Source: Macrostomum lignano
Lineage: Eukaryota
Reading direction: 5' to 3'
DNA: 62,695 nt
NCBI GenBank assembly: GCA_002269645.1
Contig: NIVC01004054.1
Coordinates: forward strand, 1-62,695
Shown here: positions 2,460 through 14,400 of the stretch, piece after piece
Layout of the letters: every line of letters starts with the position of its first letter
Position numbering within the stretch: the first letter of the stretch is position 1
Translations under genes and position numbers: made by a program
Notes under the pieces: model-generated
Told to the model about the DNA's origin: nothing
The model's database searches: none
Seen by the model: the letters and a program-made list of their open reading frames with translations, nothing else

Positions 2460-5400
2460 ATGCCGCTTCTCCACCTGGCCTCCCCATCCGCTCCCAGATT
2501 CCACTGGACTGCATTCCTGCTCGCGGCAACGCTGTTGGTTGTTAGGGCGACAGCACAGGTGAATGGGAGATTTGTTTGACCTCATGCTTGACCTTCAGTG
2601 TTATTATTTAATATGATATGACGGATTTCTTTTATTTGTTTAATTTTTTAATTGGACTGAAAGACTGAGTGGGAAGAATCTCCGTGGGCAAATATCTTAG
2701 TGCCTGTGTGTCAGTGCCAGTGTGTCAGTGCCAGTGTGTCAGTGCCAGTGTGTCAGAGCCAGTGTGTCAGAGCCATTGTGTCAGTGTGTCAGTGCCTGTG
2801 TGTCAGTGCCTGTGTGTCAGTGCCAGTGTGTCAGTGCCTGTGTCAGAGCCAGTGCCAGTGTGTCAGTGCCAGTGTGTCAGTACCAGTGTGTCAGTACCAG
2901 TGTGTCAGAGCCAGTGTGTCAGAGCCAGTGCCAGTGTGTCAGTGCCTGTGTCAGTGCCTGTGTCAGAGCCAGTGCCAGTCACTCTCTCCTCTCTCCTCCG
3001 CAATTTCAGGCCCAGAACTGCAGCGCAGTTTGCCAGAATGCCAACTGCAGATGCGACAAGGGCGAAATGGTTGGCTCCCTCGATTGCTTTCTTGCATCCT
3101 GCATCATTTTTATCCTCTGTATGGGGTTCAATACAGATCTAGGGGTGGCTGCTGAGGCACCAGTGAGAAGGGCCAGGGGTGGCTGCTGAGGCACCAGTGA
3201 GAAGGGCCAGGGGTGGCTGCTGAGGCACCAGTGAGAAGAGCCAGGGGTGGCTGCTGAGACACCGGGGAGAAGAGCCAGGGGTGGCTGCTGAGGCACCAGT
3301 GAGAAGAGCCAGGGGTGGCTGCTGAGACACCGGGGAGAAGAGCCAGGGGTGGCTGCTGAGACACCGGGGAGAAGAGCCAGGGGTGGCTGCTGAGACACCG
3401 GGGAGAAGAGCCAGGGGTGGCTGCTGAGGCACCAGTGAGAAGAGCCAGGGGTGGCTGCTGAGACACCGGGGAGAAGAGCCAGGGGTGGCGGCTGAGGCAC
3501 CGGCCCCAATACACTCCCCTCATCGAACACCTCGACGCACCGCCAGGGGCCGAGAGGCCAGCCGGGCAGGCCGGGTGCCAGTGGCAGAGTCGGCCCCCAA
3601 GGGTCGCTGGGACCCATCGGCGAGACTGGCGAGCCCGGAGCCCAGGGCTTGAAAGGCGACTTGGGCGAGAAGGGCATTCAGGTGAGCGGCTGAGGCTTGC
3701 AGTCGGGAGTTCGAACCTACCCGAAACTCTAACCGAAACTCTAACCGAAACTCTAACCGAAACTCTAACCGAAACTCCACCCGAAACTCCACCGAAACTC
3801 CACCCGAAACTCTAATTGAAACTCCACCGAAACTCCACCTGAAACTGAACTGAAACTCCACCCGAACTCCACCCGAAACTCCACCGAAACTCCACCCGAG
3901 ACTCCACCCGAAACTACACCCGAAATTCCACCCGAACTCCACCCGAAACTCCACCCGAAACTCCACCGAAACTCCACCCGAAACTCCACCGAAACTCCAC
4001 CCGAGACTCCACCCGAAACTCTATTATTTAGAAGCACACGAGAAACTAATTGTTAACAAACTCTGTTGAAAAGACAATATTTTGTTTTACCACACTGAAC
4101 TTGAACACAAACCAATCCTCACCGTTCCCCACCGCAGGGAGACAAGGGCCTCACCGGATACCCCGGTACCTCCGGCGAAGACGTGAGCACTATTCTGAGT
4201 CCAGCCTGATTTTACAGTTTGCAAACATTCCAGAGCTATAAAACCAACGCTCTGAAACCCAACCGGCCCGCAGGGTCTGCCCGGACTAGCCGGGGTCAAA
4301 GGCGACAAAGGAGATCGCGGCTGCGACGGCAAGCAGGTACGCTGAGCAGGGCCGCTCATTTCATTTTTACCAGGTCATGGTGTCTGATTGGCTGTTGATC
4401 TCAGCATCTCCGCTCCATCTCTCTTTCTGCAGGGCTTCGCCGGCGCAAAAGGCGACAAGGGCCTGAAAGGCTACCAGGGCGACCAGGGCCGAGAGGGTCC
4501 GGTCGGAGACAGGGGCGAAGCCAACGCCTCCGCAGTGGGAGCCAAGGGAGACAAGGCGAGCCGCGGCTGTTCGGGGATGGCAGACAGACAGAAAGACAGA
4601 CAGACAGACAGACAGACAGACAGACAGACAGACAGACAAACAGACACTAAGACAGACAGACAGACAGACAGACAGACAGACAGACAGACAGACAGACAGA
4701 CAGACAGACAGACAGACAGACAGACAGACAGACAGACAGACAGACAGACAGACAGACAGACAGACAGACAGACAGACAGACAGACAGACAGACAGACAGA
4801 CAGACAGACAGACAGACAGACAGACAGACAGACAGACAGACAGACAGACAGACAGACAGACAGACAGACAGACACTAAGACAGACAGACAGACAGACAGA
4901 CAGACAGACAGACAGACAGACAGACAGACAGACAGACAGACAGACAGACACTAAGACAGACAGACAGACAGACAGACAGACAGACAGACAGACAGACAGA
5001 CAGACAGACAGACAGACAGACAGACAGACAGATTTTTAACTCAGAAGGCTGTAACTCCTGTCAAATTCTACATTTTCAGGGCTTCAGAGGGGCTGACGGC
5101 AGGAACGGCACGGAGGGACCCCAGGGACCGCAGGGAGCTCGCGGCGACTTCGGACCCAAAGGAACCGAAGGAAAGCGGGTCAGTTATTGCGATTTGTCGA
5201 TGGCTTTGATGTTGTCTGTTCTCCGTTGAAGCTTTGGATTGGCAGTTGTTATTTAAGATAGTCTATAGTGAAGAAAGATTGCAAAACACTGGGTCGAATT
5301 CCACGGTGGTGGGCTATGCCATGATAGTGGGTCAGGCATGCCATGATAGTGGGTCAAGCATGCCATGATAGTGGGTCATGTTAAGATAGTGGGTCATGTT

Positions 5401-11400: not shown

Positions 11401-14400
11401 TCACTGTTTTCAATTTTCTGTCAGGGCCTTCCCGGCAGGGGTCCGCGAGGTCCCAGGGGCGACCGCGGCCCCACCGGCCCGCAGGGGCCCGTCGGCCCGC
11501 CCGGACCGCAGGGCTTGCAAGGCGACGTTGGGCCTCGCGGATTCAACGGCACCGGGCCGAAGGGCATCAAAGGCGAGGCCGGGTCAACGGGGCCCAAGGG
11601 CGACGTAGGCGAAGTTGGTCCCATCGGGCCCAAGGGCGAGAAGGGCATTGCTGGAGCGGACGGGAAGCGAGGCAGAAAGGTAATCGAGTGCATTTTTGAA
11701 TATGAGGCACCCTACCACTTTTATAAGCAATGAACTGCACTTGCCAACTTTTTTTGTAGGGCGACCGCGGACCCACAGGCGAGAAGGGAGAGAACGGCAC
11801 AATGGGTTACAAAGGCAACACCGGACCGGAAGGCGAAAAAGGCAATCTCGGACAGATTGGCCGGGTTGGCGAACCAGGCGAGAAAGGCAACACCGGACAG
11901 AAGGGCGACTTTGAGAAGGGCGACCGGGGCGGCCCCGGCTCGAAAGGCTTGAAAGGCGAAGTCGGCGCCAAAGGCGAGGACGGGCCAAGAGGCGAGAAGG
12001 GCATCCAGGGCGGGCCGGGCAAGGTGGGTCGCAAAGGCGACACGGGAGACACGGGACCGACCGGAGCTACTGGCGACCGCGGCGACAAAGGTCAGAAAGG
12101 CGAGACAGGACCCGCCGGCCAGAAAGGCGACACGGGCGACAAAGGCGATCGCGGACAAAAAGGTGTGAAAGGAGCGAGCGGACAGAAGGGCGACACTGGA
12201 GAAAAGGGCAACCTCACCGTTTGCGTGTCCGTGACGGGGCCGCTCGGCGAGAAAGGCTGGCAGGGCGCGACCGGGCAGAAAGGACAGAAAGGGAGCCTTG
12301 GTGAAATTGGTGAGTTGGTTGGCTTGAACAAAAATGCAGCGTGTAAATTCTACGTGTAACCCGAATGCGCATAGACGCAGTCTTCAAGTAGGTCAACAAC
12401 GCTTCTAATTTGGGGGCCACAGCCCCGTGGTCCAGCTCAGCGCTTTGAAGTGCGGCGGTCCATGCTCGATGCTAAGTGTAGTCACATTAATTTGGGGCTA
12501 AATTGGAATCTCGCCTTGGCTCTGCACTGCCATCAACGCCCTGGAGTGCCTGCCACAAAAGCACAGTGAACAGTGAAGTTTATGTGCGTAACGATAAATA
12601 AAGAGTCGCTGTACACTCCTGTTTGAGTGTGTGCCTGAGCGTATGACTGCGTACGTATCCTTGCGCTTGTGTGCCTGCTCAGGGGAATCATCGGAATGGC
12701 CAGTAATGCCTCTCGGCCGTTGTGACAATTTTTTTAAAGTGCGCCAGTGCATTAAAAAGCATCGTTTCAAACGGTAGAGAAGGCAAACCAGAGGGACAGA
12801 GAAAGAAAGAAGCAGACGAGAGCCAGTGAGAGGGAGATGCGAAAGCGCAGTGAGAATCAAGCAAACAGAGTCGAATGTAGATGGACTTGAGAAGGTGTGA
12901 ATAAGATACAGTGAGACGAAAGTCGCGAGATTGATAGCTACCTACCTGCAAGTGGCCGGCTAATTTAGCTAAAAATTGCACCCCCTTTCAGGAGACACCG
13001 GACCGAAAGGCTTCAAAGGTGAAAAAGGAGACACCGGCGACAACGGAACCCGCGGTGACACCGGGCCGCAGGGTCGGGATGGCGAAAAAGGCGAGAAAGG
13101 CGTCGACGGACGGGACGGAGTGAACGGCACCGTGGGCGACACCGGCGCCAGAGGGGACAAAGGCTCCACCGGGGAGAAGGGCAACACCGGCGCAATGGGA
13201 GAGAAAGGCATTCGGGGCTTGCCTGGTGAGCTGGGAGTGTTATCGATCGATTTTGCAAGCTAATTCCACTGACCCCTGGCGACCACGGGCAGCTGGTGCT
13301 GCGGTGTCGCGCAGGGAGTTCCGGTGGTGCCGGGAGTCCGCAGCGCGGTCTCCCTCCAGAAAGTCCAGGAGGTGGATGGTCGCTCGCCCGGTAGCACTTA
13401 GGCCCTTAGGGGAGCCTGTCCTGAGTAAAGGCGGGGCATTCACAGATGAAGTGCTCCGCCTTCTCAACACCAGAGAGGCAGAATGGGCATTCCTCGCTAC
13501 GAATTTTTCCCTGGAGATGACGATGCCTGGAAAAACAGCCAACGTCCCGAGAGTCACCGCCCTGGTGTCCCTGCGGTTGAGTCCAAGTTGAGTCCAAGCG
13601 CCAACTCCCCCAACCCTCATCCAGGAGCGCGCGGTCAGAAAGGCGACAACGGCACGGAGGGTCCGATCGGTCAAAAGGGCGAAAAAGGCGGCATCGGCGG
13701 CCCCGGTCAGCGTGGCGAGAAAGGCGACAACGGGACCACTGGGTACACCGGCGAGAAGGGTGAGCGATGCAGAACAGGATGCTTCATTTGAACCTGAAGC
13801 TTAAGGCCTGTAGCAACTCGAAGAGATTCGGTGACTCGCACCAGCGTAATTCGATTTGCAACTCGTTCAATCTTTAATCAAGGCAGCGGAGGCGAAAAAG
13901 GCGACAAAGGTCAGCCCGGCGAGAAAGGAAACACCATCAAAGGCGACACGGGCACGCGCGGCGAGAAGGGCGAGCCCGGTGCAGTCGGCGAGAAGGGCAT
14001 CGTGGGGCTGCCCGGCAAGCAGGGCCGGCTGGGAGCCCAGGGCCCCATCGGCAGGAAGGGCGATCCCGGCGACCGTGGCCCGAAAGGCGACCTTGGACCG
14101 GATGGCGACAAAGGCGAAGGAGGCAGCAAAGGGCCGCAGGGAGACAAGGTGCGAACTGAGCGCGAAGGTGTTGCGCTTTGTCGGCCATCCCACCCTGTTT
14201 CTCCTGAACACATTTTTCCTGACACCCGAAAGTATTCTTTTCATAAATTACCTTAAAGGGGCTGCAGCCGAGTGGTTTGAGCGTCGGACTCACGACTTGA
14301 AGGTCGGGGGTTCGTTCCCGATCCCGCTCGAAATAATTTGTGTCCTTGAGCAAGTCGCTTAACTCTGCATTGTTTCAGTTCACCCAGCTGTAAAATGGGT

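Follow-up and report, generated by a model that had tools for sequence, protein, structure and literature searches.

We analysed a 62,695-nucleotide stretch of Macrostomum lignano DNA (contig NIVC01004054.1 of assembly GCA_002269645.1, positions 1 to 62,695; hereafter the window), which carries on its plus strand a gene for a collagen IV alpha chain with fifteen N-glycosylation sequons inside its triple helix. The gene model contains 25 exons, joined by introns that are all GT-AG and consistent in phase (Table 1), and yields a coding sequence of 5148 nt which runs uninterrupted from the ATG at 2460 to the TAA at 16691–16693 and specifies a product of 1715 residues. Across this interval, Gly-X-Y coding runs occur on the plus strand only. 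The original prediction had placed the collagen helix at 2460–14148; its start coincides with the ATG, while its end is the last base of exon 22, and the helix continues for 18 residues in exon 23 (14815–14868). Only 2.4 kb of the window lies upstream of the ATG, and most of this consists of tandem repeats. The introns of the collagen gene are likewise repetitive: long micro- or minisatellites take up nearly every one, including (CAGA)113, (AGTA)52, (CAAT)115, (GACA)50 and (CTAC)94 as well as arrays of 12–36-bp units. Because these arrays are open in several frames, long spurious open reading frames appear on both strands.

The encoded protein begins with a signal-peptide-like sequence, followed by a 7S-like region with cysteines at positions 37, 41, 46 and 48 and, within the helix, at position 130. 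The Gly-X-Y domain (~1434 residues) comprises 454 in-register triplets and is broken by 19 short interruptions, one of which, in the N-terminal third, contains both Cys509 and Cys514 and provides the cystine-knot feature defined for the collagen IV helix (PMC10694668). At the C-terminus, the NC1 domain matches Pfam PF01413 (C4) twice, with E = 1.2e-62 and a score of 209 bits where the cut-off is 27, and displays 12 cysteines between residues 1503 and 1712. The gene product has the complete architecture of a collagen IV alpha chain and is a true member of that family, as had been proposed, and its disulfide-rich NC1 together with the signal-peptide-like N-terminus implies a predicted route through the endoplasmic reticulum (ER) and the secretory pathway. 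The same arrangement of signal peptide, four-cysteine 7S start, ~1400-residue helix with ~20 interruptions, cystine knot and tandem-C4 NC1 with 12 cysteines is found in human COL4A1-6, Drosophila Cg25C and Viking, and C. elegans EMB-9 and LET-2 (PMC10694668). The Macrostomum chain differs from these proteins in its NC1 sequence (~40% identical), in a Y position poor in proline, in having no visible counterpart of Lys211 and in a far denser array of sequons. Proline occupies only 47/454 Y positions and threonine is abundant there (43/454), the helix as a whole being rich in Lys, Asp, Glu and Thr, with acidic residues making up 35% of the X positions. The sulfilimine cross-link joins NC1 trimers through Met93 and Lys211. 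By inspection, no Lys is seen in the Lys211 region of the second NC1 repeat (16430–16693; compare ...TLKAGELRTHVSRC in vertebrates), and a Met is located 16 residues ahead of SRC in the first repeat. The chain may lack the sulfilimine cross-link that peroxidasin makes between NC1 domains. Collagen IV genes are characteristically arranged head-to-head in pairs that share a promoter, but exceptions with unlinked COL4 genes have been reported from planarians and other flatworms (PMC12141075).

The model contains 39 asparagines, of which 18 occupy the Y position of a triplet. Glycine comes next in 17 of these cases and Gly-Thr or Gly-Ser in 15 (12 Thr and 3 Ser), leaving only ANCR, RNGV and ANGE without a sequon. 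This census is identical to the list given in the original prediction (RNGT, ENGS, five DNGT, two ENGT, INGS, VNGS, ANGT, PNGT, FNGT and VNGT). The residues flanking the Y sequons are varied, with D/E, R, I, V, A, P or F before the Asn and E, T, L, R, I, K, M, G or V after the motif; D or E precedes it in 8/15 cases. There are 19 sequons in the whole model, none of which has proline at its central position or directly after it. The prediction had also counted five sequons outside the helix repeats. NCS, NAS, NLT and NVT are present in the model, whereas NRT lies just past the exon-8 donor that we selected.

The stretch that contains this NRT forms an open frame ending at a strong, near-consensus donor (AAG|GTGAGC, at 5731) in phase 2. 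No in-frame splice path including it was found among the combinations of downstream acceptors and donors. It was dropped from the modelled protein, as the phase-2 donor at 5731 fits no downstream exon, and the phase-0 donor at 5663 was kept. At the protein level, the stretch nevertheless resembles an M. lignano collagen IV model, P0224, at the same place (CSTVTLRRAKNKLLNMDQTMQGPKGI). It may thus be exonic, as part of a longer interruption or of an alternative or unrecognised exon arrangement, and the NRT sequon may not be in the protein at all.

The pairing of Asn with Gly-Thr/Ser greatly exceeds what the composition of the helix would produce. Ser or Thr occupies 38/454 X positions (8.4%), from which ~1.4 sequons are expected against the 15 observed (binomial P = 8e-15). 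A comparison with shuffled X/Y residues, suggested as a check in the original prediction, gave the same picture: when X residues were permuted among X positions and Y residues among Y positions in 200,000 rounds, the shuffled helices contained 1.44 sequons on average and eight at most, and 15 was reached in 0/200,000. The effect is confined to asparagine, since Ser or Thr occupies the next X position after 15/17 Y-position Asn but only after 22/417 of all other Y residues (odds ratio 135, Fisher P = 5e-16). Threonine predominates over serine at the sequons (12:3) but not after other Y residues (6:16), and 12 of the 19 X-position threonines in the helix come after an Asn.

Recent internal duplication of an NGT module was considered and ruled out by the diversity of codons and flanks and by self-BLAST of the coding sequence. 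The sequon codons are mixed (AAC or AAT for Asn, all four Thr codons, AGC and TCC for Ser), the Gly codons and flanking triplets also differ, and self-BLAST returned only weak matches of 31–67 nt with no long internal repeats. A single pair of sequons (residues 1272 and 1368) falls within 67-nt segments that are 79% identical, and removing that site changes nothing.

Nor is sequon richness a general property of collagens, or of collagen IV. NG[ST] occurs between zero and four times per chain, and tracks the frequency of Ser and Thr at X, in 120 other long collagens that the full-length query returned: collagen VII of many vertebrates, several collagen IV chains, and fibrillar collagens of cnidarians and rotifers. 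A Hydra collagen has the motif at 2/23 of its Y-position Asn, and fish collagen VII chains each contain 8–13 unprotected Asn-Gly in this position. Proteins containing NC1, pooled from an exhaustive representative search, have NG[ST] in 6/59 cases (10%), compared with 8.9% Ser/Thr at X. These comparisons exclude a family-wide explanation. Only one other member of the 120 is nominally enriched: P0103, a protein with collagen repeats whose annotation names a Wolbachia endosymbiont as its source (4/5 Y-position Asn, P = 0.002), where the enrichment is probably a repeat effect. Because the enrichment in the Macrostomum chain is specific to Asn, and is not seen in other long collagens or in the pooled NC1 proteins, we conclude that it is real and reflects selection on the sequon, as the original prediction had argued; the statistics leave no other reasonable interpretation.

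A triple-helical sequon has a precedent in the same protein family. In the vertebrate collagen IV 7S site, as in the sites described here, Gly-Thr/Ser comes after an Asn that takes the Y position of a triple-helical triplet, and the vertebrate site is both occupied and helix-compatible (PMC7619536, PMC12329708). Occupancy of this G-X-N-G-S/T-Y-G motif was confirmed using NMR and mass spectrometry for alpha1 and alpha2 (PMC7619536). According to two recent reviews on collagen biosynthesis, a collagen helix can be N-glycosylated through this motif alone; they describe N-glycosylation within Gly-X-Y as rare and 'particularly intriguing', know it only from the collagen IV 7S site and assign it no defined role (PMC7619536, PMC12329708). 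The original statement that vertebrate collagen IV is N-glycosylated in the 7S region holds (PMC7619536), but the contrast that it drew with the helix does not, as the 7S site is itself triple-helical and the position is therefore not new. The difference is one of number and distribution: vertebrate collagen IV has one site, in the N-terminal 7S overlap region, with none in the human central helix, whereas the Macrostomum chain has 15 spread over residues 177–1368.

The 7S site itself is altered in the Macrostomum chain. We take the C-N-G-T of human COL4A1 to be the counterpart of the site at Cys130. The vertebrate 7S has this C-N-G-T at its helix cysteine (motif as given in PMC7619536), while the Macrostomum chain reads C-D-G-K, and the nearest sequons, NAS and RNGT, lie 35–47 residues beyond. 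The canonical 7S sequon thus appears to have been lost. Drosophila collagen IV departs from the vertebrate pattern as well, in having a 'flipped site' (PMC10694668), and for this reason the 7S sequon is not decisive for membership of the collagen IV family. The best-supported view is that the chain may have multiplied a known 7S device along its helix, as opposed to placing glycans in a new position. A different arrangement is seen in the cuticle collagens of annelids and vestimentiferans (Riftia), where a hydroxyproline-poor helix carries O-linked galactose on Y-position Thr. Riftia cuticle collagen and the Macrostomum chain are both poor in proline or hydroxyproline and have Thr in Y, but the Riftia modification is O-linked and involves another collagen type and other enzymes, whereas the chain displays an N-linked sequon.

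On this basis we consider it probable that the selected sequons are N-glycosylated co-translationally, before the helix folds, and that the gene encodes a heavily N-glycosylated collagen IV. Glycan occupancy of the helix sites, and any function, we infer from the sequence. The timing is helped by the fact that the collagen IV helix zips from its C- to its N-terminus only after NC1 assembly (PMC7619536), so that the sequons would lie on unfolded chains when oligosaccharyltransferase acts; the feasibility of co-translational modification, which the original prediction had put forward, is consistent with this order of events. The nascent chain would enter the ER via its signal peptide and be glycosylated by oligosaccharyltransferase while still unfolded. 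The NC1 domains would then trimerise, and the helix would zip around the glycan-bearing Asn residues, as it does at the single vertebrate 7S site. The outcome would be a basement-membrane collagen with up to ~15 N-glycans per chain, mostly in the proline-poor C-terminal two-thirds. Oligosaccharyltransferase prefers N-X-T over N-X-S and disfavours a proline after the sequon, while a small Gly in the middle suits its rules. The 12:3 preference for Thr, the absence of following prolines and the central Gly all fit this enzyme. The glycans might assist folding of a slowly folding, hydroxyproline-poor helix through calnexin and calreticulin, hydrate the helices and space them laterally in the network, shield labile Asn-Gly bonds from deamidation, or protect against proteases or bind lectins. 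For the further suggestion of an adhesive collagen we found no specific support, and it stays a conjecture.

Several observations weigh against this interpretation. The packing of the helix may be strained by 15 bulky glycans on each chain, which in a homotrimer would amount to three at every axial level, and the only precedent is the single 7S level. The coincidence of sequons with proline-poor helix is a trend only: 13/15 Y sequons lie within residues 591–1490 (288 triplets) and two in the N-terminal 166 triplets, while proline at Y falls from 31/166 triplets in this N-terminal third to 16/288 in residues 591–1490. Finally, two sequons are not conserved in P0224 over the sole stretch of helix that can be aligned (residues 880–900), where VNGS corresponds to ENGQ and ANGT to PQGT. 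P0224 is frame-garbled, and the comparison is anchored only at interruptions and at this stretch.

P0224 (UniRef A0A1I8FP35, Macrostomum lignano 'Collagen IV NC1 domain-containing protein') was the closest protein in the exhaustive representative search and, as judged by NC1 identity (59% in the first repeat, 57% over the aligned shared part), is the closest sequence that was found to the chain, whether orthologue or paralogue. Other named collagen IV proteins from vertebrates, molluscs, arthropods and cnidarians are ~40–44% identical in NC1. Beyond P0224, no relative above ~44% identity was returned by the NC1 query, by the full-length query (dominated by collagen VII) or by a profile built from the window and M. 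lignano NC1 sequences, and a metagenome scan gave one weak match at 33% identity. P0224 is a 1327-residue gene model which is N-terminally truncated, out of frame over most of the helix and ends inside NC1; because of this frame problem, site-by-site conservation can be read only in residues 880–900. Several interruptions are nonetheless common to both proteins, with the patterns CSTV[AT]L..., R[IV][IV][N]C[ST]Q and N[CL][ST]TV... (CSTVTL... in P0224 versus CSTVALK in the chain, RVINCTQ versus RIVCSQ, and NCSTVIGPEGEKG versus its counterpart in the chain). Three homologous interruptions of P0224 contain sequons (NCT, NVT and NCS), and its in-frame helix pieces contain DNGT, ENGT and CNGS, which suggests that the collagen IV of this lineage may be sequon-rich in general. 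By themselves, the NC1 identity and the common interruptions make a macrostomid-like flatworm the most likely source of the window, and neither its GC content nor the satellites in its introns speak against this. The database matches also included P0221, P0226 and P0231, which have tandem NC1/C4-like repeats without a collagen helix. P0221 and P0226 begin with a sequence (e.g. MKL..GFSLLEVIVA) similar to the leader of type IV pilins in bacteria, and these appear to be prokaryotic C4-domain proteins.

Among other explanations for the enrichment, one concerns deamidation. Gly comes after every Y-position Asn of a collagen, Asn-Gly is the most deamidation-prone dipeptide, a lability that is established chemistry, and the sequons might be selected mainly against deamidation, with only glycosylated Asn tolerated before Gly in a long-lived matrix protein and the glycan having no role of its own. 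This would agree with the scarcity of unprotected Asn-Gly in the chain (2/17) and with the ordinary frequency of Y-position Asn (18/454), as it is the pairing and not the number of Asn that stands out. We regard it as unlikely, however, since other collagens tolerate unprotected Asn-Gly in Y (21/23 in Hydra, in addition to the fish collagen VII sites), the rigid triple helix slows deamidation, and swapping out the Asn would be a simpler evolutionary route. On this view the sites would still need to be glycosylated, though for a different reason. Perhaps a shade less plausible is that N-G-S/T acts as an unglycosylated structural or ligand-binding motif (conferring helix flexibility, receptor or lectin-independent docking, or a cross-link site) and matches the sequon by coincidence. 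The acidic residue before Asn in 8/15 cases could hint at a longer G-[DE]-N-G-T; yet this proportion is not significant given the abundance of acidic residues at X, and the flanks are otherwise heterogeneous. The bias towards Thr and the lack of following prolines match the rules of oligosaccharyltransferase, and the same motif is glycosylated in the vertebrate 7S (PMC7619536).

An artefact, whether of chance, composition, internal duplication, a wrong gene model or a pseudogene, we consider very improbable. Collagen sequences are by nature low-complexity and repetitive, two of the sites do share similar segments, and where exon 8 ends is uncertain. Against this stand the shuffle and Fisher results, the differing codons and flanks, and the lack of long repeats. 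All 15 sites are, furthermore, within long open Gly-X-Y exons of a gene with canonical splice sites, an open reading frame and an intact 12-Cys NC1.

Literature searches returned no report of helix N-glycosylation in invertebrate, ctenophore, sponge or flatworm collagen IV, and we tentatively suggest that this could be the first collagen N-glycosylated along its whole triple helix (~15 glycans per chain and up to ~45 per protomer), in which N-glycans take over folding quality control, stabilisation or spacing in a hydroxyproline-poor flatworm collagen IV. If true, this would provide a natural gain-of-function model for the unexplained 7S N-glycan of vertebrate collagen IV. A motif multiplied fifteen-fold under evident selection indicates that, at the genetic level at least, a triple helix can accommodate many sites of this kind. 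Macrostomum, in which RNA interference and transgenesis are available, would be a tractable system for the function of collagen-helix N-glycans, and could be used to address ER quality control, the thermal stability of proline-poor helices, lateral spacing, protection from proteases and deamidation, and lectin binding. There is also relevance for recombinant or designer collagens produced in eukaryotic hosts.

Table 1. Features of the collagen IV gene, positions of its sequons and other elements of the window.
Feature	Positions	Strand	Residue	Remark
Collagen IV gene, exons 1–13	2460-2558, 3010-3069, 3547-3681, 4138-4182, 4274-4336, 4433-4534, 5080-5178, 5529-5663, 6111-6164, 6635-6742, 7281-7748, 8055-8378, 8630-8711	+		GT-AG joins
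Collagen IV gene, exons 14–25	8806-8921, 9526-9982, 10551-10909, 11052-11303, 11425-11679, 11760-12309, 12992-13225, 13625-13759, 13883-14148, 14815-15007, 15375-15667, 16430-16693	+		GT-AG joins
Exon 1, signal-peptide-like N-terminus	2460-2558	+		By inspection: hydrophobic core, donor GTGAAT
Exon 2, 7S-type start with four Cys	3010-3069	+		Exon model; NCS sequon inside
NC1 exons, two C4 repeats, 12 Cys	14815-15007, 15375-15667, 16430-16693	+		Pfam PF01413
Sequon NCS	3016-3024	+	36	7S-type start
C-D-G-K at Cys130	4316-4327	+	130	From exon-5 layout; ~85 residues past Cys cluster
Sequon NAS	4523-4531	+	165	Helix interruption 1
Y sequon RNGT	5104-5112	+	177	
Uncertain stretch	5664-5731	+		Open frame past chosen exon-8 donor; holds NRT (5691-5699)
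Y sequon ENGS	8322-8330	+	546	
Y sequon DNGT	8838-8846	+	603	
Y sequon ENGT	9970-9978	+	779	
Y sequon INGS	10646-10654	+	815	
Y sequon DNGT	10763-10771	+	854	
Y sequon VNGS	10871-10879	+	890	
Y sequon ANGT	10898-10906	+	899	
Y sequon PNGT	11238-11246	+	965	
Y sequon FNGT	11545-11553	+	1027	Borders a one-residue interruption
Y sequon ENGT	11793-11801	+	1083	
Sequon NLT	12210-12218	+	1222	In interruption; homologous interruption of P0224 has NCS
Y sequon DNGT	13042-13050	+	1272	
Y sequon VNGT	13123-13131	+	1299	
Y sequon DNGT	13648-13656	+	1341	
Y sequon DNGT	13729-13737	+	1368	
Sequon NVT	14905-14913	+	1497	NC1
Satellite arrays in collagen introns	4581-5032, 8400-8606, 9039-9500, 15021-15220, 16042-16412, others			
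Tandem arrays outside the gene	20698-21861, 33368-34492, 40780-42257, 44215-45483, 45488-47283, 48756-52461			
Degenerate non-LTR retrotransposon	22880-25100	-		RVT_1 (E = 6e-21), then RNase H (E = 3e-9)
Rhodopsin-family receptor gene	27996-28994	+		Pfam 7tm_1, E = 5e-37
Probable last exon of receptor gene	~32857-33183	+		NPxxY motif (NPYLY)
Reverse transcriptase fragment	58712-59446	+		Near window end

The window has a GC content near 50%. An Rfam scan of the window for taxon-informative RNAs gave no match. Very large tandem arrays lie outside the collagen gene, and the extreme skews in GC and in AT that its composition profile displays are due to them. One of these arrays has an 11-bp unit (CCTCCCGGTTC) in ~337 copies at 96% identity, with a GC fraction of 0.63–0.69 and a strong strand asymmetry, and further arrays are built from 15-bp (~95 copies), 17-bp, 23-bp, 36-bp and 56-bp units. 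A degenerate non-LTR (long terminal repeat) retrotransposon on the minus strand spreads its reverse transcriptase and RNase H reading frames across three frames, and a second, shorter reverse transcriptase fragment is found on the plus strand. The window also contains a gene for a G-protein-coupled receptor of the rhodopsin family, whose probable last exon lies ~4 kb downstream of its main match, separated from it by an intron packed with tandem repeats, namely (TATC)147 and arrays of 32-bp and 16-bp units.

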